Assembly (NCBI GenBank): GCA_047495785.1
Contig: JBLDXI010000045.1
Span: 496,001-560,000 of the forward strand
DNA: 64,000 nt
DNA from: Lepidodermella squamata
Lineage: Eukaryota > Animalia > Gastrotricha
Reading direction: 5' to 3'
Position numbers and translations under genes: made by a program. A model generated the notes under the pieces. The model was given only the letters and a program-made list of their open reading frames with translations, had not been told where the DNA came from and did not search any database. Positions 13,108 through 59,822 of the stretch are shown piece by piece (the stretch's first letter is position 1; each line of letters begins with the position of its first letter).

Positions 13108-15687
13108 TTATTGGCAAAATACAGCGATTTTTTCATTATGTTTACAATCATGAATTCCCCAGTCTTTCGTCCGAATGCAGTCTTCGAGGCTGGTCTCCTT
13201 ACCGCTACATTGAATATCGTCCAGTATAAAGGAATTTACCAGCGATTTACCGAATGCTAAGTTCGACTTGGCACGCGTGGTCGCATTGTAGAATTTCGAA
13301 TTAAGGTAGCTAAAAAAAATGAAATAAAAACTCTTGAAAACGTTTAGTTGAGTGGAGTTTACCCGAGGCAGAGAGACCTGCAGACAACTTCGGTTGCTGA
13401 TTGGTTGAAACCATCATCGCATGCAATGCCCCACTTTGATTTATGGTAGACCTCAACAAAACCATACGAGCTATTCGTGCCTCCAGTCAACCGAATCGAA
13501 GCTGAGGGAATACCTTTCAAAATGAATAATAAGACGAAATTTCTTAATTTCGAAAGCTCTCACATTTCGACTCATTCCGCTCGCACTTCCCCGCTTCAAG
13601 CATAGCTTCCAGCACGTGATTGTAGCCCAGAGATTTAGCTAGCTTGATATGAGAACCCTCCTTCGAGCAACTCACATTATATTTGACCAGCAACAATTTC
13701 AACAAATCTATGCTTTCATGCGATATCGCGCGATGTAGCGGAGTATCACCGAGTTTGTCCGTCGAATTCAATACAAAAGCTACTTTTTCAGGCGAAAGAG
13801 CTGATAATAAGGCATTCGAGATTTGAAGGTCGAGCCTATTGCTTCTAACAGCTAGATGAACAGGTGTCCTCTGGAAACCATCCCCAACAATTATCGCCGC
13901 TTCGAGATTTGTCCTGTTTTAAGACGAGGCTATGATACCCTCAATAGCGCCAAGATTTTGCTTCAAAACAGCTTCGTGAAGAACTGTTTGGTTGGCTGAA
14001 TTTCTCGCCGAAAGATTCGCACCTCTTTCCACAAGGTCTTTCACGATTTCTAGCGAGGAGTAACGAGCCGCTATGTGCAGCGGCGTATCTCGAGTTTTCG
14101 AACCTATCGAGTTGATCCATTTCAAGCCAGCCGATTTCACCAAGATTCGAGCTGCCTCTGTTTCACCATTTCGAACAGCTAACATGAAAGGTGTTTGACC
14201 AGCACTGTCAGCTTGATCTAATAACTTGATGTAAAACGGCTGTTTCACTAGAAAATCCAACACCTCGTTGTAGCTGCTTTGAACTGCAATGTGCAGAACA
14301 TTTTGCCCGAGATCGTTCGTCGATTCGATTTTGGCGCCGTGTAACAACAGATGCCTGACCAGCGGCATGTTTTTCCGTTCCTTTATTGCGACTTGGAGCG
14401 AGGTTAGACCTATTCCGTCTTTAGATTTGTCGTTAATACCGGCGACCATATAGCTCATTTTCAGCAGGTAATCGACAAATTCGTTATCACGAGCGAAATG
14501 GAAAGCGTTGTAGCCGTTGTTGTCGACAGCCGAAGGGTTAGCATCCCAATTTTTGCAAAGATATTCAGCGAAAAAGTGGTTTGAAGCCGATGCACTCAGT
14601 AGGAAAGGTGTGCGCCCTAAAAAATTATCGGAATATTAGCAAAAAAAGAGGAAATTATTTACCCACCAGAAAAATCAAGCGCCTCGGTGAGATAGGAATT
14701 CTTTTTAATTAGGAATTCTGCAATTATTTCATCCATTTCAACTCCTTTAGAAGGTTTAGAACTGGGTAGAACATGAAGAGGGGAACTTCCCGTAGAGTCC
14801 TGAGCTTCAACCCTAACGCCAGCTTCTTCAACTAAGAATCTAACGTAGCGGAGCTGGCGATAAAATACCGCAAAGTGAAGCGGCGTTCCGTAAGCCAAAT
14901 TTTCGTCATAATAGAAGCATTTGCCAGAATTCAAGGATTCTTTCGGAATTACGTGTTTCGCGAACTCAACGCTTCCATTCATCGCTGCCCAGCATAAGGG
15001 TGTCTGGCCCTTGCCATCTAAATCATTCGCATTGAAGAAGTGAAAGAATTCGGGCAAATTGTGCTCGACAATCAAATGCGACAATTTCTTAGCTTCACGG
15101 CCACAACACGGCGCATTCTTAACAGAATCCCCGCCAAGTTTAACTATTGTTGCTAAGGCATCTAGATTCCTCGCGATTACTGCTTCGTGGGCTGGTTGGA
15201 GCCCATAAATGTCCTGGTGGTTCAAATCAGCGCCCTTTTCAACTAGAATCCCTATTAAACTGCTCGTGTCTTTTTCCGACCGCGCTGCGTAAAAAATTGC
15301 CGTTTTATTCTCGAACTGCCTGGCGTTGATAAGTTCAGAAACATTCCCCTTGATTTCAGCATGCTCCAGGATTAGCACAACGAGCTCCACGTGATTGTTT
15401 AAACTAGCCAGATGTAGGGGCTGTTCCTTCTTCTTTGTTGTACCGTTGAGCCGTGATCCTTTTTCAAGCAATAACTTGGCAACAGTTACCGAGCCATGCT
15501 CTGCAGCAGTAAGAAGTAACGACGGATCTGTGAAATTTTGCTTCGAAATGAATTCTTCCACCTTGGCAGCATCGTCACGCTTGATAGCGTCATTTATTGC
15601 CGAATAGTCGAACTTCGGCTGATCTCTGGCTTCGCAAAAAACTATCAGCGCAGAGCTGAGCAAAACGTACAGAAATTCATTAATCAT
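13108..15687 (-). CDS. Signal peptide + ankyrin repeats + C-terminal SRCR domain; contains an in-frame TAA at 13919-13921
   Basis: The leader is MINEFLYVLLSSALIVFCEA, followed by many TPLH.A ankyrin motifs and intron 14617-14666. The last exons give IRLTGG...GFVEVYH..KWGIACDDGF....VVCRSL-G...ILDDIQCSGKETSLEDC...WGIHDCKHNE.IAVFCQ* (SRCR consensus). Confidence 0.8.
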
Positions 15688-16045
15688 TGTCTGGGTTTCG
15701 TGAAATTTTAGTGCTTTACGCATGATAGCAGTTGAAAAAGCTTCGCGTGTAATTTAAATTGCGGAATTTCACGGTTCAATTAAAATGCGAATTTCAATCC
15801 TCCTCTGTTTTTTCATGACAGCCAACTGTTTCAAGGGATGGAACTATTCCAGATTTCAGAACAGGTAAATTTCAAGGTCTTCTGAGGTTACTAGTAGAAT
15901 AATTCAATGGGGCCGTGTTGTTCCGCGGTTGAACATAACCTCAAAAAAGGTCAGAATGGGTTCAGTTATTTCCAAATAAAAGCAAATAAAATCACTTCTG
16001 ATCAACATTTTTATTTGAAAATCCTATCAGAGATAAAATTGTTTT

Positions 16046-17806
16046 CTATTTGAAGTTAGCCGATAGCTCCACTTCTTTCATTAACCGTAGCACCAGTTCA
16101 TCGTGAAATGCCGGCGCCGCGATTTGAACCGCCAGCGGCAATCCAACAGAATCAGCCATCAAACCAGCTTTAATCACCCTGTGATAAGCATCGCGCTCAC
16201 CAGGGTACGCCGCCATAGCAGCCTGGTCTTCGTGGCTCACCCGGCTAACCGGCACAACGCCAGCCGGCCAGCCTAGCATATTGAACAGGCAAGTGTAAGT
16301 CGCCGCGCCTAGGCTATCACGAGGCGAACGCAAAGGCAGGGCCGGGCACGGAAAAGCCGGGCACAAAATCGCATCACATTTCGTTCCGGCAAATTTCGCG
16401 ATGAAATCAGCCCGCAATTTTGAGCATCGAGTGAAAAAATCGTTGACATCCTGAGGCCGGGAAGCTTTCTGTCGCGATCGGACGGTCTCGGCGGGAAATT
16501 TCCCGATAAAATGCCCAGCGATATACGAATAAAGATTCACGAGAAAATTCGGTAATTTTCTCAGGGTATATAGCGATTTGTTTGAGAACGCGACTTCAAC
16601 GTCGTCCTGGAACATCGCCATTTGTTTTTCAGCTCGGTCTAACGTCATTGCCTCACAAATCGCAAGGAAGCTTTCCTTGGCGCAGATTGGTCGAAATTCG
16701 ACTAATTCATGGCCTAGATTAGACAAAATGCCCCTCGCGATTGAAACGGCTCGTTTAATAGCTGGAACGCTCTCGACAACACCATTATCAAGGAAATAAG
16801 CGATTCGAAGCTTATTTTTCGCCTTGAACAAATTTTCGTTGAACTCAATCGGCACTAAAGAGCTGAATTTAAATCGGTCGAAAGTTGGTTTCGAGTATAA
16901 AATTCGGTGAACCGTGACTAGAATATCGACCTCTCGAGCTAGGAACCCACAAGCGCCGAATTGATTCAGGGCGACCCGGTTGTCGACATCGCCCGGGCAC
17001 GAGCCGCCGTATAACATGCGAGAATGGGTTGGTTTCAGGGCGACGCAACCACACCACGCCGCAGGGATCCTTAAACTGCCCCCAGCGTCGTTGCCAACGC
17101 CTAGCAACGACCCGCCGTCACTGATTAGCGCACCCTCCCCGCTAGAACTGCCACCCGGGCTTCGAGCTACGTCATTCGGGTTCGATGTCGACCCGTAGAC
17201 AGCATTTTCAGAGTCGAACGAGTCCATACTCTGGGGTAGGTTTGTCTTGCAAAACGGGACGCAGCCTGCCCATTCGAGGAAATCAATCAAAGGGCCGCTT
17301 TTCGATGACTTGAATCGGCCGATAAACGGCGCATGGCCAGCTGTTGTTTCAGTGCCTTCGATGAAAAAACACTCTTTCACAGAAACTGGCAGGCCGAAAA
17401 GCGGCTTTTTATAGGAATTTGCGGGCAATGAATCTAGATTTCGCGCGACAATTTCGGCGTCGCGTCGAAATTCTGTGATGCAATTTGTTTTATCCGAGCA
17501 ATGAATCGCTTTGTGTTGATAGGCCCACAACACCTCGGCGGCGGTTAAACGGCCCAGCTGCAGCTGAGACATTAATTGGTTGAAACTCAGAGATGCGATT
17601 TGTTTCAGTCGATCCGAATGCGGGCTTAGTTTGCATTTCAGCTCTTCTTTTGTCGTTTTCAAATCGCTTCGAAGTCGTTTTATGTTCGACCAATGACGGC
17701 GCAGTCGAATTTGTCGGCGAATAAATTGTAGAGCAAAATAGGTCATCAGAATGACTATCGCTGTTGAACCAGCCGGGTAAAAGTAAGACTGCCAAATTAG
17801 CTCCAT
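16046..17806 (-). CDS. FAAH: Fatty acid amide hydrolase-like amidase, intronless
   Basis: N-terminal TM helix. Amidase signature PLFGLPVSVKE, PGGSSSGEGA and GNDAGGSLRIPA, with the Lys-Ser-Ser triad intact. Confidence 0.88.
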   Translation of the reverse strand: MELIWQSYFYPAGSTAIVILMTYFALQFIRRQIRLRRHWSNIKRLRSDLKTTKEELKCKLSPHSDRLKQIASLSFNQLMSQLQLGRLTAAEVLWAYQHKAIHCSDKTNCITEFRRDAEIVARNLDSLPANSYKKPLFGLPVSVKECFFIEGTETTAGHAPFIGRFKSSKSGPLIDFLEWAGCVPFCKTNLPQSMDSFDSENAVYGSTSNPNDVARSPGGSSSGEGALISDGGSLLGVGNDAGGSLRIPAAWCGCVALKPTHSRMLYGGSCPGDVDNRVALNQFGACGFLAREVDILVTVHRILYSKPTFDRFKFSSLVPIEFNENLFKAKNKLRIAYFLDNGVVESVPAIKRAVSIARGILSNLGHELVEFRPICAKESFLAICEAMTLDRAEKQMAMFQDDVEVAFSNKSLYTLRKLPNFLVNLYSYIAGHFIGKFPAETVRSRQKASRPQDVNDFFTRCSKLRADFIAKFAGTKCDAILCPAFPCPALPLRSPRDSLGAATYTCLFNMLGWPAGVVPVSRVSHEDQAAMAAYPGERDAYHRVIKAGLMADSVGLPLAVQIAAPAFHDELVLRLMKEVELSANFK

Positions 17807-30275: not shown

Positions 30276-32623
30276 ATGCTTCTTAATCGGTCTTACGGAG
30301 CATTCGCTAAGATCGGCCAACGACGATTTTTATCTGCCAAAAGTGGATACTACGTTCTGATACCAGAACTTCCCACTGATACTCCGGAGACTAACAGTCT
30401 TCTTAGACTCGATGGGCTTCCTGAATTTGCTAAAATCAAAGAAAATGATGTTGTGACTGGATGCTCGAAACTGGCGCTGGAGTATGACGTTGAGTTTGGC
30501 ACTATAACGGAACGTCTATCGGCGGGGGACTCGAATTTTGGCACAATTTTTGGTGCTGTCGAAGCTCATCTGGCGCCGTTGAGCTGCGCTTTAAGGCTGG
30601 CTGAACATCTTAAAAATGTGGATGAACGTTACCAGGCACCGTTTTGGAGAGTTGCTCGCCAGGTGTTAAAAGCGAAGTCCTCCAGGTGGAGCAACGAAAT
30701 GCTCTATCAGGCTATTCAGAAAAACCTCTCCACCAATCAGCATCTTTCTAGCATTGAAAAGAGACTGTGTGAATATTACGTTCACCAGTGCAAACTTGCT
30801 GGGTTGGATCTACCGGATAAGAAGCGGCGGGTTCTTCTAGCTGCAGAAAATAGCATGGAAAAGGAACAAATTTCATTTCGCGAATGTGCTGTTAGATCTC
30901 AAAATCTCTTTCAGCAAGTAGTGGATAATCCTGCTGTGTTTGGAAAAGCCCCCCGATCGCTGTATTATAAGCTGGCTTTGAATCCTGCGGAGCCTCTGAA
31001 AGGTCCTTGGAGAGTGACAATTCAGCCTGACGTTTATTTTGACCTGTTACGTTATACTCAGGATGCTCAATTGCGATGGAGCATTTGGCATGCATACGTT
31101 AATCGAGCTTCAACAAAGCACACGACTGAATATTTGTCGAATCACAAAAGAATCCAAGCTATTCGTAACCATGCGCTGGACAGAGCTCGTGTTCTTGGCT
31201 TCAAATGTGCTGCCGATTTGGATTTGCAACGAACGATGGCAGGCTCTGTCAAAACTGTGAGGAATGCTCTCGAAAAAGCGAACGATCGGATTCGGCCTCT
31301 AGCTGCAGAAGAAATGAAACAACTCAATGGATTTGCCTCTTCTAATGGCAAACAACTGCAACCTTGGGATATTCCATACTGGCGTCAGCAGTGGCACGAC
31401 AAGCTATTCAGTCAAACATTTGAAAACGAGGACAATTTAATACCATTGGAGACAACTCTTTCAGGAGTCTTCAATTTAATTGATTCATTATTCGGCGTCA
31501 AATTTGAGCGTTTACCTCCCCATGCAGCCCAACCCTGGCATCCAAGCGTAAATGTTTATCGGGCTGTCGATTCTGACTCGGGTCGCAAGGTTTTGGGTAG
31601 GTTTCGTTAGGATTTAAAATATTAATTAACTGTAAATTTGATTCTTGAACAGGTTACGTATATTTTGATTTGTTTGCGCGGCCTGAGACTGGCAAATGCG
31701 CTGGCAGCTGGTAGGTTTTGAATTATTTTGGTTGTTCCGCATAATACTTGATTTGCATTCAGGACTTCTCTTGGACGAGAGCCAAGTGCTCTGCTTGGAT
31801 GCAGTCCTTTGTCATTTGTTGTCATGAATCTTCCGAAACCCCTCGCTGGTCAACCCGCATTCATTTCCGCCTCTAATCTCTTCGAACTGGTCCGACTAAT
31901 TGGCTCATCACTCCCTCATTTGCTATGCCACAACCAATTTTCGGAGCTGTCTGCGGGTCTGCTTGTTGAACAAGACTTTGCCCCAGTTGCCGGAAATCTG
32001 CTCCGATTCATCGTCTCCGATCATCCAGAGGTGCTGCGAAGCGTTTGCCCAACCTTGTCAGACACCCAACTGAAGGCTGTCACAAGCTCAACCTACCACA
32101 TGTTTTCTTACGACTCGGCCTATCAGCTCTTCATGTCAGCTTTCGATCTCGACCTTCATGCCGGCGATGACCATCATTGGGCCGAAATCAGGAAAGAAGG
32201 TTGGAAAAAGTATCTAACCGACGTCATCCCTCTTCACGAACGGGTTAGTTTAATCATCAACATGAATAATTGAATTTTTAAATGTTTATTGACCCAATTT
32301 AGGATGATCATTCACCTTGTGGCATGGCTCAAATTTTCTGTGCGCCCCAGTTCGGTCTCTATTATTCTCTTAAATGGTCAGAATTCGTCGCGCGAGATCT
32401 AGTTACTTCGTTCTCGCTGAACGAGCCGAAAGGCAATGAACCAGCTTGGGCCTCAGCGTCTGCTAAGGAAACCGGGCGAAGACTCCGTCGCTCAATATTC
32501 GAACCTGGTTGCTTGCTAACAGCGAACGATGCGTTCAGGCGAGCTCGCGGGCGCGATTTTTCAATCGATTCAGCCATGGATCAACTGACTGGTGTTTTGA
32601 AAAGCACAAATATGGGTGCCTGA
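30276..32623 (+). CDS. M3A oligopeptidase A homolog, probably mitochondrial and catalytically inactive
   Basis: An Arg-rich presequence-like N-terminus is followed by LPEFAKI, GPWRVT, LQPWDIPYW, PWHPSV, YFDLFARP, YYSLKWSE and FRRARGRD motifs. Four exons. The HExxH position reads RLIGS. Confidence 0.82.
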
Positions 32624-42769: not shown

Positions 42770-45463
42770 ATGATTTTAGCTATTGCAATGTCTTCTTTCC
42801 TGGGCATAGCCGTTTGCTCAGCGACGAATGAGTGGATTGCTAGGCCCGAATTCGCAGACCGAATACCGGCAAACCTTAACCCAGTTTTCAACGGCGTTGT
42901 ATCATCTAAAGCTGAATGTCTTGGCCGTTGTGATATGAGTGGGGACCTTTGCAGCAGCGTCGCTTACAGCGAAAGACTGAAGTCTTGCCAGATGTTCTAC
43001 CATCCAGGTTTAGCTACCCCGCTTCCTGCGCTGAAACAGGACCCAGTTCAATCTCATCAGATGTATTACAAGGTAAGGAGACCCTCTTACAAGATACTGA
43101 TTTTTCAATTGGTATTTTCTCAGCGCTTCTTCTGCCCAGTTGGGTGGGAAGCTGACATTTCAGCCCGTAGATGTTACTACCTCGGCTCCGATGCTTTGAC
43201 AAGACCAAACGCATGGAAGGTTTGCGACGAGGCGATGTTATCTGAATTGGTAGCCTTTCAGACAGCCGATGATCGGTCCAGTTTGTATAAGGTATCTGTC
43301 CAAAACTTTCCCAAGGGCTTTTAGCCATTCCTGTCCCCACAGATATTGAAGGAATATCCAGATGTCTCTAAATGGTGGACAGGTTACGCCATGTTTGATG
43401 ACAAAATGTGGCCGCGGCCTGTTGAAGGTAAATTCAGACAGGGTTGGATCCAGCCTTACTTACTAGCATCATGAATCCTAGAAATTCCGGGCTACTTGAA
43501 AAGACGTGGTGATTGTCCCGGTAATGATCTGCTAGCCGCTAATTTGGCAATATCTCTAAAAGACTGCATTGCTAAATGCGACCGCAGTTACCAAGATAGA
43601 TGTGTTGCCATTGAGTACTTCCCTACAGCTGGAGAATGTGCTCTGAAAAGCGCGTCATGCGAAAACCCGTTAACTGTTGCAAATGACTACAATACGGTAT
43701 GGCTGTATGAGAAAATCCGCGGCCGGCCAGCCTCGCGTCTTCCAGCAAAAGATTGCAGCGAATGGAGCACAATAGTAGCAAAAACGGTTGGATCAAATTG
43801 GCAGTGTCTCCAACTGTGTCGAAACTACCCTGGTTGCATCGCATTCTCGTTTCAGAACTCTACGTCATCATGCACAGTCAGGTCGAAGTCTTGCGTTCAA
43901 AAAAGCAACAACGTTGGAGTTGCGTTTTACGATATGGGAGAAATATCAAATGGGATCTGTCCTTTCGGGATACGGTACCACGATACTTGCTTTATATATC
44001 AACGGTCGCGGTTGGACTTTCCAACTGCGCATGTGGGGTGTAGGGCACTCGGTGGTACGATGTTCAAACCAATCGAAGCGAGTCAAAAGGCTGCCTTTGC
44101 GAATTCAATGTTTTACTCATTCGATTCATCTCAACAACCAACTTTTTACCCGATTTATGTTGACTTGACTGATAGCGATGTGGAGGGTACATTCAAAAGC
44201 TACTACGACGGCCTGTCGTTCTCTAATCCAGCATATGATATGTTCACTGCAGGGTAAGTCCTCACATCTCTATTCGTATGACTCGGTTGAATTCACTGTA
44301 ATGGCTAGTGTTATGAACGGAGGGACAACGATGAACTGCGTCATTGCTGATGATCCTACTATCTCAATGAAGGATACAGCATTAAGAAACACTCAGTGTA
44401 ATTTTCAAATCAACACGATCTGCGAAACTCGTATTTTCACCAATTTGATAAGAAAAATTACTTATTTGTCCTTCTACAGCCATTTCGCAGTCCTGGCCCT
44501 CTACATGCCGATTTACGCCGCCTGGCACCGAATATATGGGGACACAAGCAAGAACAACCTCCGGGGCGCTGTGTAGACAGTGGAGCGATACAATTTACGG
44601 CTCTTCTTCGAGTTGGCGAAATTTCCCTGATTGGGACTTGGATCACGGTTTTTGCAGGAATCCTGACCAGTTCAATATTTCCGACTCTGTGTGGTGTATT
44701 CGCGATGACAATGGCCTGGCCGAATCCTGCGACGTGCCTATTTGCCGTAAGAACCAATCGTCTCATTTCATCTTCATGGCATTTGTTTTCGTTTTAGCGG
44801 AAAGTGATTGGGCCGATGGTCAGGTTTTCAACGATTACACCCAGCCATACGCTGCTATAACTTATTCCCCACAATCGGAAGACGATTTTGACTGGACGAC
44901 GGAGAGTTTGACTCAAACCGCGAATCCGTTGTGTAGCTTGTCAATGGATGACTGTTTGTTTAAAAGCAATCTAGATATCAATGTTTTTTAGAGGCTTTCA
45001 TTTCAAGGGTGCCCGTACTATTTTAAGGGCAGCTGCTACAAAATTTATCAAATCCCCAAGTTTTACGATGAGGCAAACGCTATTTGCAGCAAGAATGGTT
45101 GGCAGCTAGTGATCATAAATTCGAGAGAAGAGCAGCAATACTTAGCTGGAATATACATGAGAATAGGTGGTAAGTCATCGCACTTTCTCTAGGCTTGAAT
45201 TACCTTTTTTAACTACTGCCATAGTGAATTATCAAGCTCCAATGTTGGGGTATTTGATTGGAGCAAGTGGCAATGCAACGACTGGACTTCTGTGGTCGAA
45301 TGGAGACGCATTGACATACACGAACTGGGAGTCATTGCCACCTTCACTCAGTGCAACTCAGACCTGTGTTACTGTCGGACATTTCAATTATGGGGCAACA
45401 TGGTCTGACTCACCGTGCACTTACGCGAGGGCATGGTTTATCTGCGAATTGGGACTGGGCTAA
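42770..45463 (+). CDS. Secreted mosaic lectin: PAN/apple domains, C-type lectin domains and a kringle
   Basis: Signal peptide; PAN patterns (C..RC....C.S.....C); CLECT motifs (CPVGW..CYY, WSNG..LTYTNW..CV..W.D.PC..FICE); kringle (Y.GT..TTSG..C.QW..CRNPD..WC..CDVPIC). Exact exon boundaries are tentative. Confidence 0.8.
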
Positions 45464-47314: not shown

Positions 47315-48696
47315 ATGATTTTCGATTTCCTCTCTTCAGTTTTCTCGTGGTTGTTAGGTTGGGTTCAGGCAGTCTGTCAAAAGACGAACACGATTTCGGG
47401 GAGAACGAGTGGCTATATTGTAAATCAAGGCTTCCCTGAGTCTTATCTGAATGATTCGCGGTGTGCATGGCAGGTTACAACCAAACCAGGAACTGCCATC
47501 AGGTAAATATCAGGCCCTTGAACCTCGAAATAAATAAGCAAATTCTTATGTTTGTTAAGGTTTCATCTGACGATTTATCAGCTTGAACTATGCTCGGGCT
47601 GCTCTTGCGACTACGTCGAGATTTACGATGGACCTTCGTCAGAAAATTCTCGCCTGCTGATTCGAGGCTGCAAAGCGGATTACACGGATACCTTCACTAC
47701 GACTTCGAATTTCGGTTTCGTTTATTTCCATACCGACAACTCGAATGAAAACAGCCCATCTGCTAAGTCTAAAAGAGGCTTCCATATTCACTTTGAAGAA
47801 AGTTAGAACCTCAATTTGATTAGGGAAGCTTCAATATTTCCTCATTTACAGTCGCAGCGCAACCTGCAGAAGACGAACTCCCAATCTTAGCCGAAGGTAA
47901 AGTGAAACAGTAACCTTCATAGAATATAGAACCATTGCTTTTTCACAGCCGAGTTGAGCGGAAAATTATGGACTGAGCAATTTTTGTTTGGCGAGCGGCT
48001 TACAAGTTGGCGAGACGACTTGAAAGACTCAATAAGCCCGGCATTTTCTGAAACGAAAGAACTTTTCGAGAATGCGGTAAGTTCTGCCAATGCGTGGCAA
48101 ACAGGCTCTTATTGCGATGAATTTAGCTAAAACTTATCTATCGACAAGCTGGACTGAACTTCACGAGCATTGAAGTGCTTCATTTCGTGAACCACGATAC
48201 CGGCGAAACAAATAAAACGGTTGCCGAGTACATTTCTGTGATCAAACCATATCGCTTGTTTGCCTCAAGCAGCAGCCAACAGTCATCGAATTCTGACGAA
48301 AATGCAGCGAGTGCTGAATATGACATTGATGCATCGCTGGACACAGCGATTGCGGTGCTTCATCAATCGGGTGTATTCTATCACATGTTTAGGGATGGTC
48401 CGATTAATGACGTAACGCAGTTTACTCTCCGCGTTCCTTCAAATCACGGTGCGTGCATTAAACATTTTGCTGTAATGCTTACTTGCTGTTTTTCCTCTTC
48501 GCAGAGAAATGGTACACTCGACCAGTCACTATCACTGTCGGTTCTTTGATTGGATTGAGTGTTTTGATCGGGGTTTCTTTTGGACTGTAAGTTAAAATAC
48601 TAACTTATGCAAGTTATAATGACATCCGAATTCAATTTTTGTTTCAGCTCTTGGCTTTTAAAACACAATCATCGATTTCGATTACTGATGGAGTGA
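47315..48696 (+). CDS. CUB domain + SEA-like region + TM receptor, paralog 1
   Basis: CUB motifs GYIVNQGFPESY...CAWQV, CSCDYVEIYDGP and FHTDNS...GFHIHF. A TM exon at ~48505-48587 is followed by a short tail ending FRLLME*. Confidence 0.72.
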
Positions 48697-48790
48697 TATT
48701 ATTATCCAATCGCTAGAGTATTTATTTTGATTTGAATTATTAAATTCAAGCAATAATTCAAACATGATAATGTGGTGATTGCGACATAAT

Positions 48791-51700
48791 TTACAAAATC
48801 ACACAGCCTTTCGATGAGTTCTTCGAAGCTTTCAACTTCTCTTGGTATTCAAGAATGGCCTGTTTCGCCAGTTGTTGCATTTCTTCGCCCAAGCTTGTCA
48901 ACGAGGCGCCTCGGGCTACCAAGACTTCCAAAACAGCCCCATTACCAGCCAAAGCCGCTTCAATAAGGACTGTGTTACCGTTCGATCCGATTGCAGATAT
49001 ATTTGCCCCTTTATCCAGCAGCATAGCAGCAGACTGTGGTTTGTTGCCCCTAGCCGCTATTACCAACGCTGGGTCACCGTTGCTGTCTTTCTCCTCTGGA
49101 TTTGCGCCAGCGCCAATGAGAATTTCGATTCCAATGCTGGAATTGTTTTTCACCGCTACTAGCAACGGAGTATAACCTGCCTTGTTTCTCGCTTGTATAT
49201 CTGCTCCTTTTTTCAACAAAGCTTCAACTATAGGCCGAGAGCTACCAGCAGCTGCGAAGTGAAGCGCCGTGTCCCCATCTCGATCAGTCTCGTTCACATT
49301 TGAGCCGCGATCAAGCAGCCATTCCACTATTGAAACGACATTGCGGGTAGCAGCAATCATAAGTAGTGTTTGGCCTTTATCGTTTTTCAGCTGAGTGTCG
49401 GCTCCTTGTTTCAGCAATAAGGCTACTATTTTTTCTCGACTTTGCCTTACCGCCTGGAAAATGGCTGATTCATCGGAACTGTCGGTTTCGTTGATCTCAG
49501 CTCCGTGATCCAGCAGAAGCGTGACTAGCTTTTCGCTGCCACTTTTTGCAGCAAGGATTAGGAGAAGCTCTCCGTGCGTACTTTTATCTGTTAGCTTCAC
49601 CCCTGAATCTAAGAGGAGTTCGACGACATTGTCATGGCCGTACCTGGTCGCGAGAACCAACGCTGTTTCGCCGTCATTGTTTGTCTCATTTAGCAAAGCT
49701 CCGCGTTTGAGCAGAAACTCGGCAACTTTTCCATGACCATTCGATGCCGCTCGAAGAAAGGCTGAATATCCTTCCTCATTCCGCGCTCGAACATCTGCGC
49801 CTTTCGACATCAAATATGTGACGCAGCCCAAATGTCCTCCACCAGCTGCGGCAATCAGAGAATGGCTTCCGCTGTCGATTTTCTCGCCCGGCGAAGCTCC
49901 GTTGTTGACCAAGTATTCCAAAATATGTTGCTGGCCATTGGCTGCTGCGTCAACAAGCAAGTCGTCACTCACTTTCAAGGCCTCTTTTGGGTCGTCGAAG
50001 CTGTTTCTCAACAAGTAGTCTAGCAAAATCAAATGACCAGTTACCGCGGCCGCTCTGAGAATGTCTCTAGAGTTAAGCTGACGAGCCATTGCAGAGGAAT
50101 CGCCATTTTCTTCCTGACTGCAAAGTTCATCAAAAGCTGAATGGATTATATGCTCAAGAAGTCCAGCAATCAAGTCGAATTGGCATCTTTTGAGAAATGA
50201 GATTAGGGTCCATATCGAAGAATGAGGCTGTTCATTCGAACCAAATTGGCTCTCTAGCTCCAAAATCACTCGAACTCTCAGTTTACCCAATGCCTTTTGC
50301 TTCCGGGTCGCATTGGAAATTTTAGTGATCGAGTCAGCAATTCCGAATTCTTTCGCCGCACGATCAACACAAGATTCGTGTAAAATCTGATGGATTGAGG
50401 CGATCTTTCCGAATAGAGAGTCTTCCTCCATTCGAACTAGCGATAGTCTTTGAAACTGAACGCAGAATTCATCAGCATCAGCTTCAGTTGAGTTCCAAAA
50501 ACGGGCTAATATATTGCAGGTCAATGCTTCTGCAGGGTTCAGAAGAATGAAGACATAGTATCTAAGTCGCATTTCTTCGTCCAGAGATTCCAGAGCCAAC
50601 TCGAAGAGTTGAGCGGCTTTCTTCTCACCAACGCTCAAATCGCCGAGCCGCTTTTTCTCAACAAGATTCTTGTAGGTAGCATTGTAGTCTGCAGAGTTTT
50701 TGAATTGGCAGCCAATAAGTCCAACAATCAATGGCAAGCCACAGCAGCTGTTTGTCAGTTGTTTCAATTGTTCATTGTCGAGACGATCTTTCAACTTGAA
50801 ATCTGTGTAAAAAACCTCTGTGATTTGTTCGTTTGACAGGTAGCCGATGGAATGTGGGTTTTTCACATCATCGAGTTTCAAATAAGGGTTGAACGTCGGC
50901 TGCTCGGTAAATATTGAAGCAGAACGGGTAATGACGCAGCAAATCGCCTCCTGGCACTCCATTCGGAAGGTGTCAAGAATAGAAACGGCGAATACGTCGT
51001 CTAGGATGAACAAAATCCTCTTCTTTTTGGTGGCAAAGTGACGTACCATCTGGCGCAAGGAGGCGAATCCTTCTATCATCTCTTGGTCAGCTTTTTTGCC
51101 CAAATCTTTTGTTAGGGCATTTAGAAATTCTTGCTTTGTTCTTCGATCAGTAAGACCACTTCGCCAGTCATAACAGTTGAGCCAGATCATCATTTGAATG
51201 TTGCAATGCCGTTGAAAAAACACTCTGTGATTTGAATCGCGCAACACATGGGAGATGAGCATCGATTTCCCGATACCGCCGCTGCCCTCGATGACGAAAA
51301 ACCCTGCGTCTAAATGCAATTCCCCAGTTGGATGAGATGAAATGTCAAGTTAAAGCCTACCTGTTTCTTTTTTGTTGCAGAGAGCACGAAGACCGCATCT
51401 TATGCCATGTTCTTCTTCTGAGCGATTAAAATAGTAGTCGAACTGAGGGACATCAAAGAATCTAGAAATTTTTGGTTGTTCGCACCATAGACTACACAAT
51501 CTGTTGGGAACTTACTCAATGTTGGCTAAGTCTGAATTGTCGCCTTGCTTAGCCAGCAGCTGTGACTGGAACGAATCGACAATTGAACTTTTATTAATCT
51601 TGCGCGGGCTTTCGATTTTGCTCTCATTCCATTTCGATTTCCCTAACATCTGATCCATCAGCTCTTTCGCTTTTCGAGGCAATCCTTCAGTTTGACTGAC

Positions 51701-53103
51701 TAGTTCACGCAACTTATCATTGTCTATCATCTTGCCCTTCGCTTTCAGACCATTTATCAATAGCTCCGACATATCTTTGTCTGATAGCTTTTCAATGACG
51801 ACTTTCTCATCAACCAGCTGGTGCCAGGCTGAAAGTGAGCTCTCCATAAAGTTTGCGCGATCGCTGTCGATGACGGCAATGCACGGCACGGCCGGCCCGC
51901 CCTCGACGTTGAGTGCTTTCATAAAACTCAATAGATCAATGTGGAAAACATCGTCGATGATGAAAAGAGGTGGCGCATCGAGCTTTTCTGTTAGCATGCG
52001 AACTTGATCATGGAAGTCAGAAGTGTTAGAAATGCTTCGCTTTGTTGCGATAGTCACTTGGCCGAAGAAGTCTTCTTCGAAAGCAAATTTCTCTTTCTCG
52101 GAATTGAAACCCTTTCTCCATGGATAGCAATTAAGGAGGAATACTGTACGGACACCACATGTTGTTGACAATTGTGATTGGGCTTTGTGCATGAGCTGCC
52201 GAATAAAAAACGTTTTCCCCACGCCTTCATCGCCACTAATAACCAGCAACCCACCTGAGATTTGATAAAATCGTTCGCTTGAAGCCTTTTTTGCTTATTT
52301 TCTATTTCTTACCAAGTTTATTAGGCATGTGGCAGATGTTTTTAATTGCCTTGAGGACTGGATCTAGTCGATGAGGCTTGATGCCAGGGCCAATTTCCCG
52401 AGGATCCGATGTTCGCAAAGGCTCAAAGACCCTGAAGCGGCTTCTGAAATCGAAAACATCTGCAAGTAAATGTTAGCTAACGTGAGCCATTTTACATGTT
52501 GCGGAGATCGTATAGAGGCAGTAGATGCTGCTCTATCTTTGCAGTGACTTCCTCAAGAGCAACGCCATCTTCGTATAGAACGAACAACTTGTCCCCAATA
52601 ACCTCAGACAACCAAGTTTCGTCTATCACAACTTCCCTGCCAAGCTTAATTGGCATGATTGGCTTCGCCTTGGTAACAGCCAAATCTGCTTCGAAGCGGC
52701 AGTTTTTACTGCTCAAATAAGGCTCGCTGTAGAAAATGAGAACAATATCAGCTGAGGTAATGCCCTGAAAATAATTTAGAGTGAACAAAGTTGACTTTGC
52801 CGCAATGGTTGCTACCCACCCTTTCCATGCTTTCCGTTATTGAGTCATGAATCTCCAGCTGGTCAATCCACACGTTGTAGCGTTTAGTCGATTGAAGATG
52901 TTGCGCCATCGCCCGCACATCTTGTGGACGTCCTTTTGTTTTTTCCCAGCAATAGCTGATGAAAATGTTCAACCGCTTAGGATCGTGGACGTTACTCAAA
53001 AAGCCATATCCCGCTTCCGGCATGGCTATAAGCAATTAAAGATGACGCTGCTAAGCTTCAAACGCTTCAATGGTATGTACTCACGCATTACGTGAGTCGC
53101 CAT
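48791..53103 (-). CDS. TIR - NB-ARC-like - NB-ARC - ankyrin repeat - CaaX STAND protein (~1327 aa)
   Basis: Exons 53085-53103, 52820-53025, 52496-52764, 52313-52443, 51516-52254, 51361-51461 and 48791-51309 join in frame via GT-AG introns. Motifs: TIR IFISYCW..VWID..SKNCRFE; Walker A GDEGVGKT and GSGGIGKS; Walker B FIIDDV and FILDDV; GLP twice; about a dozen ANK repeats; ends CVIL*. Confidence 0.85.
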
Positions 53104-53662
53104 ATAGGTTTATTGATCACATTTTGTGTAAATGGCATGCCGTGCACTATGGTCGCCTAGGCTGGGATCATTCTATCGATTGAAGATTAAAGTGACCAAG
53201 CGGCGGGTGGTATATTAGTTTTAACCCTAGAGCATTAGTTGCTCCAATCGGGAAGTCGACTGCCATTGTGGAAAAGAATTGAAGTGAAGAATCATTGGTA
53301 TTTTAAAAGTCATTTATTCACGTCTGTCACTGTTTCGCCATGCATTTTAAATCAACCTTGTTCTGTCGGCTGAAATTCAAATTAGGCGCCATGAAAGTGT
53401 TGCAGCACGTCGTGGAGTTACGGTGAGTCATAAAAACCAGAACTGCATCATAGTCTCGTGAATGCTCTCAGTTTGCACTCACCTTCATGGTAGGCGTTTG
53501 CAAATGCAGTGTGTACATAAGAAACTCTCGCACTTTGTTGTAAGCGTGCGATTGAAATTTCAGTAGAATGTCTTACAACGTCCATGCGACAATGACAAAC
53601 TTCAAAAATGAACTCTGCCAAATAACAAACTACCTACCTTGACAACTATTATTAATTATTCT

Positions 53663-55117
53663 ATGAACAAGAAGGTTGCCAGATCGAGTCGAGCATTGCC
53701 AATTTTTTGTCTCCTGTTTGTGATCTTTGCATCCGTCCATGGAGTTTGTGAACATCCTCATGTAATTCGCAACAAAGTCGAAGGCGTTATAACCAACGAC
53801 GATTATCCCAATCCGTATCGAAACAGTTCGAAATGCTCCTGGTTGGTTGTTGTGAAACCTGGTTACCAAATCCGAGCCTTCTTGACCATATCTTTCATGG
53901 AAATGTGCCCGGATTGTCGTTGCGATTATGTGGAAATCTATGATGGACCCTCTACTTCCTATTCCCAATTACTGGTTCGAGCATGCCGCGAAGGATTCAA
54001 AGACAACTTATATTCATCGTCGAATGTCATACTGGTACATTTTTACTCTGATAACAAGGGCAGCGAACCTTCATCGGTAATTGATCATGGTTTCAAGCTG
54101 ACGTTCGTGGAAGGTTTCTTTTCAAGTTTCTGATATTTCTCTTGTCAAATTATATGTCATTTTAGACAAAATTATCAGCTCTAACATTGATCAATTCCTT
54201 CCAGTCGACTGTATGTTTTAGCCTCATTCGCGTGGACAAATTTATATCACCTGATTTTTTAAAGGCACTTTAAACGGCTCGCTGAGTGTTGAAAAATTCA
54301 TCTTCGGATCGCATTTGGTTGGATGGCTGCCTGAATTCGCAGATGAAACAAGTCCCGCCCGTGCAGAAGCAATCAGCTTTTTTGAGCTAACGGTGAGCTT
54401 TAGCTTTGCATACATTCAGGTTTGTTTTCAACTGGGAATTAATCAGCTACGTAAGGTCTATCAACAAGCTGGGATCGACTATCAAGCTCTTGAAGTTACT
54501 GATCTAGGGTAAACCCATTTCCAGGCTTTTTCGCGATAATAGTTTTGCTTCAAATAGAAAGATCGAGCAGTTAAACGGCACTAAAGTATATGTTAGTGTG
54601 CAGTATCGCGTTGCAGTGAAGAGCTTGATGGTTTTTGCTGGTGAGACCGAGTCTGAACTGTCCGTACGTAATCGAGTCGAGTCAGCCTTGAAGGATGCTG
54701 TCAGCTTACTGACCAAGTCAGGAGTTTTCTATCAATCTTTCGACTCAGAGCCACAACTGGCTGTTACTCGAGTTTCTATGCATTTATCCATCGCAAAAGG
54801 TCAGTTTTTTACTTTGAACTATCTGAATGGCCAAACACGCACTTCTTAATTTCTTTTGTTTGTAGAAAAAAGCGCAGTTTTGATTGTCGGAGGTTCGTTG
54901 CTTGGATTCGCAGCCATTTGCACGTTATCTATGCTATTGTAATATTTCGCAGTTTGCAGCTAAAATTATGGCCTATAACCTAAATTTTTCCAGTTACTTG
55001 CTAATCAAGCACTCATCCCGGTTCAAGAAACTGGCAGTAGACGATGATGGCACTCCTCCTGTGACTGGTGGAAATGATGCTTCTATAAAGACACTTTTGC
55101 TCAGATCAAATAGCTAA
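53663..55117 (+). CDS. CUB domain + SEA-like region + TM receptor, paralog 2
   Basis: Signal peptide and CUB motifs (YPNPY..CSWLV..CRCDYVEIYDGP..HFYSDN..GFKLTF). It shares FxFG..L..W, VY.QAG and SGVFY blocks and the exon layout with paralog 1. Confidence 0.72.
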
Positions 55118-56407: not shown

Positions 56408-58786
56408 TCACGGCAATGCAGCTCGTCTCGCGCCGGTCGGGTTGGAAACAGGATGGTAACCAACACCTGGCCACGTAAAGGAATTTAATTATTGATCAAA
56501 AATTTCGATTGAAAGCTTACTCCTTAATTCCTCGGCCCTTTCGTCTCGAGCGTTGTTTCTTGTTTGGAGGCATCTCAAGACATCAGCCTTATTTCGCATA
56601 GACGGGTAGAAATATTGAAGGTATGCATCAGTCTCCTCGGGATTAGTTAAAAATGCGACAATATTTTCCTCCGACTCCATTGGTTCTAATGGCACAAATC
56701 CTCGATCGACGAATTTTCCATTTACATTTTGCATTACACATCTTGAAGTGAAATAATGTCAAGTCATTAAGATTTCATAATTCAATTTCAAGCTAACGGA
56801 GCAACAATGAAACCAGGGGCCTTGGAAGCGAACCGTAATAGAAACTATATAAAACAATTAAAATGTTCAAATGCTTATGGTTAGCAGATGAAATGCATAC
56901 CGTGCCTACTGGTTGGTCCCTAAGCATTGCCTCGCATTGCTCGCCGGTCGCAAACCCAACAAAGTTGCCTGGGCTGGAATGGAAAGATAGGACAAAGGTA
57001 GATTTGTTATTTACGAAGTTTCCAACTATTTATCGCTTACAGTAACTTCTTGAGTGGGGTTTCGCTTATCAATTTCATGTTTGCGTAAAACCAGTCCCAA
57101 AATGCTCTGCCGCCCCATTTTGTTTTTTGCATGTTCGGCAGAGGATCTTGGCAAAACTTTGCCCGCGTCACCAGGGTATCATTCGTGTAGTCGTTTGATT
57201 GGAAAAGCGTAACTGCCAGGCAGACAAAGTGATGATCCGCTAGTGTACTGCCTGTGTTAGCCCACCAAAGGCTTTGCAGCAATTCTTTAATACTACTAAA
57301 AGGTACAGCGTCTGGAACTTCAAATGGTCTTCGGTTCTGCGAGAATCAACAAAACAAAAAAATAGATGAAAAAAATGAAGATATGTCTTTAATGAGATTT
57401 AAACCTGGTGATCTCCAAAGAAGTTATCCCAGTGTATAGGCGCTGCAGTTTTAGCTTCTTGGTTAGATTTTTGAACAGTTATCAACATGGGTGCTGATAG
57501 GACTTTCGCGGTGATATAGCCGCCGGACAGTATGGGAATACTCAGATGACTGAATAGGGCTAAGCAATGCTTGTCTGTGACCTTTTTGTCGTCTCGCTTT
57601 GGCTGTTAATCGGCATTAAAACTTCATGGCAAACTAATGTTAGAGTAGCAGCTTACCACAGTTATTCCTTTGAACGATGCCCCAAACCATCGATTGCCGA
57701 TGTTGCGTGCTAACGGTGAAGAAAATATCCAAGATACTGGCGACTGCAAGCTCGAAGAAAATTCTCTAGCTTGCAGCTCTGACATGAATGCTAGCTGAAC
57801 CTGAAAGGCAAACAGCATTTTTTCGATTTGGAATTGTTGTCTTAAAGCTAACCGTTGTAGCCTCGACTCCCGTCGAGCTAACAATGCTTGGGCAAAGCAT
57901 TCGCACGTCAATGTTCAACTTGGAACCGTAATTGACAATCTGCGTCGGCTGCGTCACGAGTATCAACGATTTCGAAACAAGTAACGCTAGCTTATTCCGA
58001 GTTGATTCAATGGCTTGATAAATATGTGAGGAGACCGCTTGATAATCTTGGTAATTTCCGAGTGCCTTTTAGTAAATTGTGGTAAAATTTGAATTAAAAA
58101 TAAATTGCATCTCTAACCTGAGCCCGTTCATTCAAAAAATTCAGATTATTCACTCCGGTAAAAACTGCGATGTCGTAAGCTAATTGGTACTGGTTCACGT
58201 TTAGAGTTACCATTGCGCCACTCAACGAGCGATAAACTTCCGCGTCGTAGCGAGATCGATAATTCTGTAGGACTAAAAATGCCCGATCTTGAACGTGCAT
58301 GAAGCTATCAATAGCTGCCATTATTTCAGCTCCATACCCGTTGAACCTTTGCGACAGAAGGTTGGATTCTGTAACATAAGCCGCCACACAAGTTTCAATG
58401 TCCGGGCGCTGGAAAAACTGCTCGAACAGTTGAGTTTCCTTGTACAAACACCAAATCAAACGGCGTAGAAAATCTCCTGCGTTCGTACTCGATTGTTGTA
58501 AAGATGAAACATTTTCCTCGATATTCCTCTTATCGTCCGTTGAAAGTTGGCCGTTTAATTTCGATATTAAAAAATTATGTGCACTAGTAACCATCGAAAT
58601 CGCCGTATCCAACGTCCATTGATCGACAAGATACCAAGCTCTAGCGTTTTCTGCTATCCAATCAGCCAGAGCAATACGCAGTCCTACAGAAATTTTCTGC
58701 GACTCGTAGATAGAGGCGTAACTTTGTTTCAGGGCGGTGTCATAGCTTTGCGTGTATGCCCATAATACCTCGGGCTCGACAAGCAT
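56408..58786 (-). CDS. STAT: Divergent STAT transcription factor
   Basis: N-domain LRIALADWI; DBD LILVTQPTQIV..DVRML and VLSAP..IHWDNFF; linker RRPFEVPD..FWDWF; SH2 GT-FLLRF (split by an intron) and YFYP; last exon VGYHP with the candidate phospho-Tyr; stop at 56408-56410. Confidence 0.82.
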
Positions 58787-59822
58787 TTTCGTTGAAAGTG
58801 TATATTTTGTGGAGTGAACAGGAGGAAGACTTTGGCAGGCATATAAAAAACGGCTAAGCAAACATTACAATCTCCATATCGCAATTATAACGGGTTTTTA
58901 CCGGTAATTTTTTATCCTTATCAGCTATAATAAATATCTCATACTTGTTCATAAATGCTTCGAGTGCGTCAAAAGCAGACTGATAAAATTGGAGATGAAG
59001 AAAGAATGAGTTAGTTATATATAGAGTAAACATTGATGACTCAAGTTCTTGTTGATTCAACTTCAACCTTGCATCACAACAATAATATCAAAGCTTTGCT
59101 CCAATCAGTATTTTTCTCAGGTAGCTTTATACCGTTTAAAACTTGAACACCAAAAGGCTCGCTGCTGGCCTGGAAATGTATCCTCAGTTTAACGAAAAAC
59201 TTAAAAGCTGTAGCCCTTGAAAGTGGGTGCGCGAAATACATACCCTAAATGGTTTCATCTCAAAATTTGAGACTTCAGCGCTAGATTTCCCCAAAACATT
59301 CTTTTTTAACGTCTTCAGTGGAATGTCAATGTTTTTGTTATCATGCCAAACCGATAGATTTCCCTATTGCGCGTATTTCGAGCCATGTACATGAGTTACT
59401 TCAACCTGCAGAGCCGATATCGATTATAAGTATCGATTTCACAAATCAATGATTTTTTCGATATCAACTGCCTTGGAATCCAACATCGATAGTTTTCTTC
59501 ATACCTTTGGGCATCATGTAGCTAAAATATAAATACCAAGTTCAGAAGTAATGTCGATCAACAACTGAAAACGCCGAAATAGCAAAAAAAAATTGGGAAA
59601 ATTGAGTGCCGGGGCGCTTAATTTTACTGCTGGAACCTGGTGCTAATATTTTTGGAGCTTTTGCACCTAAATTCTTACTCGCTTCGCTCGCCCTTTTCTA
59701 TCTGTTATGCTATCTAGGTATGTGGCATTCAATTATAAATTTAAGCACCAATCAAGGTATTAGGGAAAAACACTGATAGATGAGTCAATTTTTATTTTCT
59801 AGCCATCAAATTGTAAAAAAAG

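Follow-up and report, generated by a model that had tools for sequence, protein, structure and literature searches.

What does an animal genome encode where a TIR domain, two nucleotide-binding modules and an ankyrin array follow one another on the same strand, and do these parts belong to a single protein? The locus that raises this question lies in a 64,000-nt stretch of the gastrotrich Lepidodermella squamata (assembly GCA_047495785.1, contig JBLDXI010000045.1, positions 496,001 to 560,000 of the forward strand), which we call the window and whose numbering is used below unless a contig of the genome (C followed by a number) is named. TIR-NB-ARC receptors are a textbook plant immune sensor; in animals, to our knowledge, records of the combination come mostly from cnidarian surveys, and its biochemistry has never been investigated. 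An earlier interpretation made from the letters alone, here termed the sequence-only reading, had proposed a lineage-specific sensor related to nucleotide-binding, leucine-rich repeat (LRR) receptors (NLRs), with tandem nucleotide switches, a possibly enzymatic TIR and a prenylation motif. Our analysis makes it likely that the locus holds a single transcribed gene, whose product is a 1320-aa cytosolic STAND (signal transduction ATPase with numerous domains; NLR-like) protein, a member of a large, fast-diverging, lineage-specific TIR-NB-ARC-ankyrin family and, within it, of an old subfamily with an extra nucleotide-binding domain (NBD). The order of domains is TIR_2, a first module of NBD plus lid (NB1), an Apaf-1-type NB-ARC composed of NBD, helical domain 1 (HD1) and winged-helix domain (WHD) (NB2), about 12 ankyrin repeats and a terminal CVIL.

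The four long pieces of open reading frame (ORF) from which the sequence-only reading started lie on the minus strand where it had placed them. Our splice model joins six exons between 53023 and 48791 on the minus strand into a single open frame of 1320 aa ending in CVIL; the single spliced gene and the order of its domains thus stand, with six exons and 1320 aa in our model against the seven exons and roughly 1327 aa originally proposed. All five introns are GT..AG and measure, from intron 1 to intron 5, 55, 52, 58, 54 and 51 nt. Every motif that had been cited (SKNCRFE, GDEGVGKT, FIIDDV, EGLPRK, GSGGIGKS, FILDDV, CCGLPL and IHQILHE) is present. The parts of the gene, from its 5' end, are as follows.

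53024..53174, minus strand: 5' untranslated and promoter-proximal region; cDNA coverage stops at about 53175.
52820..53023, minus strand: exon 1, which opens with the start codon (53023-53021) and encodes aa 1-68, the N-terminal half of the TIR.
52496..52764, minus strand: exon 2, encoding aa 69-157, the C-terminal half of the TIR, with the Glu93 codon at 52692-52690 within SKNCRFE.
52313..52443, minus strand: exon 3, the linker ahead of NB1 (aa 158-201), with a phase-1 junction just ahead of the first beta strand of NB1.
51516..52254, minus strand: exon 4, NB1, an NBD with helical lid followed by a disordered tail; Walker A GDEGVGKT at 52234-52211, then FIIDDV and EGLPRK.
51361..51461, minus strand: exon 5, the small linker ahead of NB2 (aa 448-481), with a phase-1 junction as in exon 3.
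50354..51309, minus strand: exon 6, first part, NB2 (NBD-HD1-WHD); Walker A GSGGIGKS at 51286-51263, then FILDDV, ITR, CCGLPL and IHQ (His788 codon at 50392-50390).
48884..50074, minus strand: exon 6, second part, an array of some 12 ankyrin repeats (aa ~894-1290) with a presumed sensor or autoinhibitory role.
48791..48883, minus strand: helical, Lys-rich C-terminal tail, with CVIL at 48805-48794 and the stop codon at 48793-48791.

The stretch is contained in two public sequencing runs, X1 and X2, the latter as one 30-kb contig and perhaps as the assembly from which the stretch derives. X1 agrees with the window at 99-100% identity, and we took it as cDNA on account of a SMART-type PCR oligo at one loose end and of contigs that skip introns. 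Intron 1 appears as a contig joint 52763>52819 (CT..AC on the plus strand) and intron 3 as a joint 52252>52311; for intron 2 a loose end at 52443 runs on into the end of exon 2, and for intron 4 reciprocal loose ends fit exactly at 51461 and 51516. The transcript evidence called for across the junctions has therefore been obtained for four of the five, that between exons 5 and 6 not being seen directly; the X1 contigs cover the exons as well. At the 5' side, X1 depth falls from 12.2 in bin 52984-53174 to 0.08-0 across 53175-53556, which places the start of the gene near 53100-53170, separate from the plus-strand CUB-like genes that flank it. An upstream ATG at 53103 could add 7 aa as a mini-exon, by way of a possible 59-nt GT..AG intron at 53084-53026, or, if left unspliced, heads a 17-codon upstream ORF; no joint at this intron is reported among the X1 contigs, which neither supports nor excludes the mini-exon. 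X1 also contains nine 'opposite strands' joints within 4.5 kb (window 48448-53121), which look like fold-back artefacts of the library or of contig assembly rather than biology.

Is the fusion of the two halves real? Two points weigh against it. X1 carries the label 'RNA?', its status as cDNA being drawn from the splicing and the adaptor-like end only, and for the junction of exons 5 and 6 X1 shows just a contig boundary (51309), intron 5 being placed by inference. A TIR-NB1 gene (intron 5 retained, ending in ...KKETGRL and a stop) and an NB2-ankyrin gene might accordingly be separate, or joined by a read-through artefact, with the 1320-aa protein existing only on paper; besides the junction missing from the listed cDNA joints, one contig joint touches 51311, within intron 5, and depth dips in bin 51265-51455. 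We nonetheless regard such a split as very improbable. The exon 4-5 splice is present in the cDNA, and exon 5 is a conserved coding exon of the same phase in the closest paralog, on C11, where homologous small coding exons precede both NB modules with the same phase-1 junction, two residues ahead of the first strand. Exon 6 has no in-frame ATG ahead of Walker A, and NB2 therefore depends on the upstream exons. Moreover, a paralog on C42 (L011) holds NB1 and NB2 within one uninterrupted ORF, and the NB1-NB2 tandem recurs at about 12 loci of the genome. The matching units of small exon and NB exon suggest that the tandem arose through duplication of an exon pair. We therefore keep to a single gene in what follows.

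Can the TIR domain be an enzyme? Pfam TIR_2 is matched in two collinear exon pieces (profile positions 1-46, 22.7 bits; 45-94, 27.8 bits), which span 1-94 of the 122 profile positions and each of which, taken alone, falls just below the 28-bit cut-off. Paralog TIRs that align to it exceed this cut-off (e.g. 55.2 and 44.3 bits), and the position of the TIR-internal intron is common to the paralogs. One single-NB paralog (L009, C54:2109438-2109836) has a TIR that reads through one TGA where the other paralogs have this intron; the TGA is probably just the intron, a pseudogene being the alternative.

The Glu that the sequence-only reading had singled out is indeed retained. It lies in a C-x-x-E motif (Glu93 here) and is invariant in eight paralogs that are otherwise 32-38% identical. 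A phmmer search of the PDB with the 89-aa TIR exon alone returned noise only. With a half-TIR profile built from the eight paralog exons and run against the PDB, we found the NAD+-cleaving enzyme (NADase) Cat1 (E 0.014), RPS4 (0.14) and SNC1 (0.34), and Glu93 falls on the catalytic Glu of the WC..E motif in all three targets (WCWDELE in Cat1 and WCVRELE in RPS4).

NADase activity requires this Glu but is not guaranteed by it, and the TIRs of many Toll-like receptors (TLRs) keep it too without known NADase activity. The proposal of an enzymatic TIR hence stands as far as the alignment of its Glu and is not settled by it. Weighing against the enzyme are the PDB matches, which at E 0.014-0.34 are weak because only half of the domain was used, and the Trp of the plant and bacterial WC..E motif, which is Asn here and Asn or Asp across the family. 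Both the substitution of this Trp and the many other TIR_2 genes in the genome, as potential partners, would suit a scaffold that works through TIR-TIR assembly as in TLR/MyD88, the Glu being incidental. The domain, however, fits TIR_2 (the SARM1/bacterial type) and not the TLR-type TIR model, its Glu-bearing half best matches NADase Cat1 and then the TIRs of plant TIR-type NLRs (TNLs), and the Glu has stayed fixed while the rest of the domain diverged among the paralogs. A pure scaffold is a possibility that we take seriously but lean against; judged from its sequence, a TIR that cleaves NAD+ is plausible, not established.

Does the protein carry two switches? The first module, in a 245-aa ORF, has its best Pfam match not in NB-ARC but in P-loop/nSTAND3 (36.2 bits). 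It is homologous to NB2, with 27% identity over ~200 aa and E-values of 1e-11 to 1e-15. The AlphaFold2 (AF2) model of NB1 (predicted local distance difference test score, pLDDT, 81.5) is ordered from residue 1 to ~205, as an NBD followed by three lid helices, and residues 208-245 are predicted to be disordered. Foldseek matches of this model include WRR4A, Cdc6/ORC, NRC2, CED-4 and Apaf-1. Neither the AF2 model nor Foldseek shows a WHD in NB1, which is hence not a complete NBD-HD1-WHD unit and, just as had been suspected, stops before the winged helix. While the two homologous NBDs stand, 'tandem nucleotide switches' is too strong a term for NB1, because the module has no WHD/MHD lock and, in a finding that weighs against a switch, Ser in place of the sensor-1 Arg.

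These same features would be expected if NB1 were an inert relic, the decayed half of an old internal duplication that serves as a linker only and binds no nucleotide. Beyond the missing WHD, the sensor-1 Arg is Ser in the NB1 of both the studied gene and its C11 paralog (the three other NB1 domains among the five that we aligned retain Arg), and the second Walker B acid varies between NB1 domains (DD, DS or DN). Decay, however, would be expected to take the P-loop first, and Walker A (GxxGxGKT) is intact in all five; in the studied gene Walker B (DD) is intact as well. All five domains end at the same point, and just before this shared end four of them keep a GLP(R/S)xA-type motif, G(L/N)P(R/S)(K/R)A, the C48 copy having no such motif in the alignment. 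The fold is predicted with confidence despite divergence to 20-39% identity between NB1 domains, which furthermore form old clades. An inert relic thus seems rather unlikely to us. On its motifs and model NB1 probably binds nucleotide, and a role as nucleotide-binding or structural module is likelier for it than one as a second switch.

The second module is an NB-ARC by every measure that we applied. Its 842-aa ORF matches Pfam NB-ARC with 49.6 bits (cut-off 23.5; profile 18-216 of 248), as against 27.7 bits for NACHT. The motifs GSGGIGKS, FILDDV, sensor-1 ITR and CCGLPL align with Apaf-1 and the paralogs, and phmmer aligns NB2 to residues 148-428 of Apaf-1 (1z6t) with E 3.4e-7. When a one-residue gap is added to this alignment on inspection, IHQ meets the LHD of Apaf-1, which puts a His at the MHD position. 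AF2, run on a 26-sequence alignment, gave a model with pLDDT 84.6 and a predicted template modelling score (pTM) of 0.79, whose best Foldseek matches are closed, ADP-bound Apaf-1 structures (3shf, 3sfz and 1z6t; TMq 0.58), followed by resting NRC2, CED-4 and plant resistosome chains. In good agreement with the sequence-only reading, NB2 is thus, as modelled, a complete NB-ARC (NBD-HD1-WHD) in a closed, Apaf-1-like fold with His at the MHD position.

C-terminal to NB2 lies an ankyrin array with a 33-aa periodicity, matched by Ank_2 (1.5e-93) and also by Ank, Ank_3, Ank_4 and Ank_5. Ankyrin families are the only Pfam matches on this side of the NB-ARC. No LRR was matched in Pfam, and the protein is accordingly neither an animal NLR in the strict, NACHT-LRR sense nor a bearer of the LRR sensor of plant TNLs.

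What of the end of the protein? CVIL stands immediately before the stop codon and has the Cys-aliphatic-aliphatic-X (CaaX) form. A CaaX box with Leu as X predicts modification by geranylgeranyltransferase type I. The motif that had been read as a prenylation signal is therefore there, and its conservation in relatives is not: the nearest paralog ends in ...NMDKL, a CaaX is absent from the examined paralog ends (C11, C48, C3, C66 and C42 ORFs), and the last 60 aa have no other match anywhere in the genome. With CaaX confined to one copy, conservation lends prenylation no support, and this uniqueness weighs against a functional box. In a family of about 70 members a single CaaX could well have arisen by chance, leaving CVIL an unmodified C-terminus like any other; the exon that encodes it, however, is transcribed, and the box is a canonical C-a-a-L that follows a Lys-rich KLKASKNSSKG at the end of a predicted helix. 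To us the choice between chance and function is evenly poised. If functional, the box may lead to geranylgeranylation of this single paralog and to its attachment to membranes.

How old is the double-NB arrangement, and how widespread? When the 121-Mb genome was searched in six frames with NB2, 81 matches at 21-40% identity emerged, corresponding to ~65-70 loci, some of them in tandem clusters (e.g. C42:1046-1056 kb and C9:2.89-2.92 Mb). At least 18 of the NB-ARC family loci have a TIR_2 match immediately upstream. About 12 loci have an NB1-type match within 1.5 kb upstream of an NB2 and on its strand: the studied gene, C11, C48, C54:668-670 kb, C29:493-495 kb, C25:436-438 kb, C15:2192-2194 kb, C23, C66 and three on C42, where for C54, C29, C25 and C15 the census consists of match coordinates only. 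The C11 and C48 paralogs have the same TIR-NB1-NB2-ankyrin order as the studied gene. A local tandem array of the double-NB subfamily lies at C42:1046404-1056166 (plus strand), where each of three adjacent members has an NB1-type module ahead of NB2, that of the middle member being weak. The single-NB form of the family is likewise abundant in the genome.

In a maximum-likelihood tree of the NBDs, the NB1 domains of the studied gene, C11 and C48 form a clade (98/91) apart from the NB2 domains of the same genes, and NB2 of the studied gene pairs with that of C11 (100/99); all NB1 domains can be placed in one group (64/78; 68% of bootstrap trees). Since the NB1 clades are separate from NB2, the tandem is older than these paralogs and has been retained in them.

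Outside this genome, relatives are few. A word-indexed protein search with the NB-ARC part gave no match. An exhaustive HMMER search with NB2 of 1.84 billion representative proteins gave 26 matches at E<=1e-3, the best at 27% identity, which bears out the family as lineage-specific. The top eight (P0001-P0008) are unnamed ENA metagenome ORFs of NB-ARC plus ankyrin or TIR_2 plus NB-ARC type, two of which are on contigs from one sample and have a single-NB architecture; after these come Apaf-1/Dark of Trichinella, Sycon and wasps and one plant NLR. A feature search of the ESM Atlas led to generic NB-ARC/nSTAND clusters only. By sequence similarity, the family is a branch of the animal AP-ATPase clade that has so far gone unannotated.

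That its nearest named relatives are Apaf-1 and Dark could mean that the family is not immune at all, its members being Apaf-1-like adaptors of cell death or development, or serving allorecognition or transposon control. Against this speak the ~65-70 divergent copies, in part clustered in tandem, with variable repeat sensors and TIR heads; we infer from this copy pattern a resemblance to immune receptor families and not to a single-copy apoptosome adaptor. A non-immune role for the family appears distinctly improbable in this light, and an NLR-like receptor family remains our preferred interpretation.

Set against known systems, NB2 shares with Apaf-1, Dark and CED-4 the NBD-HD1-WHD order, Walker A and B, the sensor-1 Arg, the GxP motif and a His at the LHD/MHD position, and Apaf-1/Dark are its best sequence matches both in the PDB and among named proteins. 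The differences are that the studied protein has a TIR in place of the CARD, ankyrin repeats in place of WD40 propellers and an extra NBD-lid module, and that Apaf-1, Dark and CED-4 are present in one copy whereas the studied family counts ~65-70 divergent ones. With plant TNLs (RPP1, Roq1, WRR4A and RPS4) it has in common the order of TIR, NB-ARC and repeat sensor and the Glu at the catalytic alpha-C motif position, and TNL resistosome chains are among the fold matches of NB1 and NB2. It differs from them in its ankyrin instead of LRR sensor, in a TIR_2-type TIR with Asn/Asp for the motif Trp, in its animal host and in an NB-ARC that is nearer to animal Apaf-1 than to plant NLRs; a C-JID, for which no search was made, was not seen either.

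Among animals, the closest architectures are cnidarian. NACHT/NB-ARC proteins of cnidarians carry TIR domains, and TPR, WD40 or Ank repeats (PMC7642931; PMC8260672); Acropora has 11 NACHT/NB-ARC proteins with Ank repeats, and Hydra viridissima has the TIR plus NACHT/NB-ARC combination (PMC7642931). These NLR-like repertoires resemble the studied family in joining NACHT/NB-ARC to TIR and in replacing LRR by TPR, WD40 or Ank; they differ in that a tandem NBD is not mentioned in the cnidarian accounts that we compared, and named proteins include no close sequence relative of the studied family. In placozoans there are 39 NB-ARC genes, which lack LRRs (PMC6321704). Searches of the literature for TIR-NB-ARC proteins bearing ankyrin repeats turned up mostly plant and fungal work; the cnidarian and placozoan accounts came from further searches.

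Tandem NB-ARC modules are known from plant NLRs such as wheat WTN1 (10.1101/2024.08.30.610185), which, like rice Pib, has two NB-ARC-type modules in one receptor polypeptide (10.1101/2024.08.30.610185). WTN1 and Pib are CC-type (coiled-coil) NLRs with LRRs that form Ca2+ channels; in the studied subfamily the first module consistently stops short of the WHD, stands behind a TIR and is of independent origin inside an animal family. A last comparison is with the single-NB TIR-NB-ARC-ankyrin paralogs and P0001-P0008, which share the TIR_2/NB-ARC/ankyrin architecture, the TIR intron position and 25-39% identity, and differ in having neither NB1 nor the CaaX tail. Precedents for the architecture thus exist: TIR with NB-ARC/NACHT and NB-ARC/NACHT with ankyrin in cnidarians, tandem NB-ARC in plants, and the abundant single-NB form in this very genome. 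What is new here is that an animal family has, between TIR and NB-ARC, an old, retained and transcript-supported NBD-lid module, together with a CaaX end in a single copy.

The neighbourhood of the gene contains several other coding features. CUB-like, apparently secreted, genes flank the receptor on the opposite strand (47315-48700 and 53639-54133, both plus): the former has a 61-nt GT..AG intron (48587-48647) in the cDNA, and the ORF at 53639 has a signal-peptide-like start and a 1253-nt cDNA contig over 53696-54100. Farther away, an exon of an M3 peptidase, a housekeeping enzyme, at 30276-31607 (plus strand) has its best match, at 68% identity, in an unnamed ENA metagenome protein, and its best named matches, at 31-33% identity, in Haliotis, Watersipora and Paralvinella (mollusc, bryozoan and annelid), so that the host would seem to belong to an animal lineage with little sampling. 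A search for the Rfam SL1 family matched neither this genome nor the control genomes. The other ORFs of the window are listed here.

14659-15723, minus strand: stand-alone ankyrin ORF.
16046-17806, minus strand: amidase (FAAH-like, 263 bits).
58094-58861, minus strand: STAT_int.
43496-44257, plus strand: PAN-domain ORF.

Elsewhere in the genome, a cluster of very long open frames (to ~2600 aa) at C32:1888003-2002857 (plus strand), with TIR_2 pieces in each, constitutes a separate TIR family. Tandem clusters of short genes at C19:1081622-1136722 (minus strand) and C33:1138821-1141415 (plus strand) have the strongest TIR_2 scores of the genome (75-86 bits) and no NB-ARC match nearby.

How might such a protein work? 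What we say of immune function, of a ligand, of oligomerisation and of NADase activity is carried over by analogy from Apaf-1 and plant TNLs, which tells against reading any of it too firmly. In the scheme that we propose, the ankyrin array would keep NB2 closed and ADP-bound through His788 of the WHD; binding of a ligand or of a modified-self signal would open NB2, and nucleotide exchange would lead to oligomerisation. The clustered TIRs would then signal, either as an NAD+-cleaving enzyme that uses Glu93 or as a TIR-TIR scaffold. Between TIR and NB2, NB1 would probably act as a spacer or as a second layer of oligomerisation and not as an independent switch. A bolder version, which we put forward in spite of judging it improbable, is a two-tier oligomer modelled on the stacked D1/D2 rings of type II AAA+ proteins: a ring of NB1 upon the NB-ARC ring would set the spacing or stoichiometry of the TIR heads and so gate NADase activity, and in this paralog the assembly would take place at a membrane by way of a geranylgeranylated ankyrin end. 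Were this to hold, it would be a new way of building a TIR resistosome, evolved independently in animals.

Should the TIR, on the other hand, prove to be no more than a scaffold and NB1 inert, the gene would simply join the other divergent members of a lineage-specific NLR-like expansion. The genome in any case offers a large, expressed family of animal TIR-NB-ARC receptors, and with it natural experiments on three matters: in what way STAND oligomers arrange their TIR domains; whether NAD+ chemistry, as in plants, bacteria and SARM1, is also at work in animal TIR-NLRs; and how tandem NBDs work, a question that is open also for plant receptors of the WTN1/Pib type.

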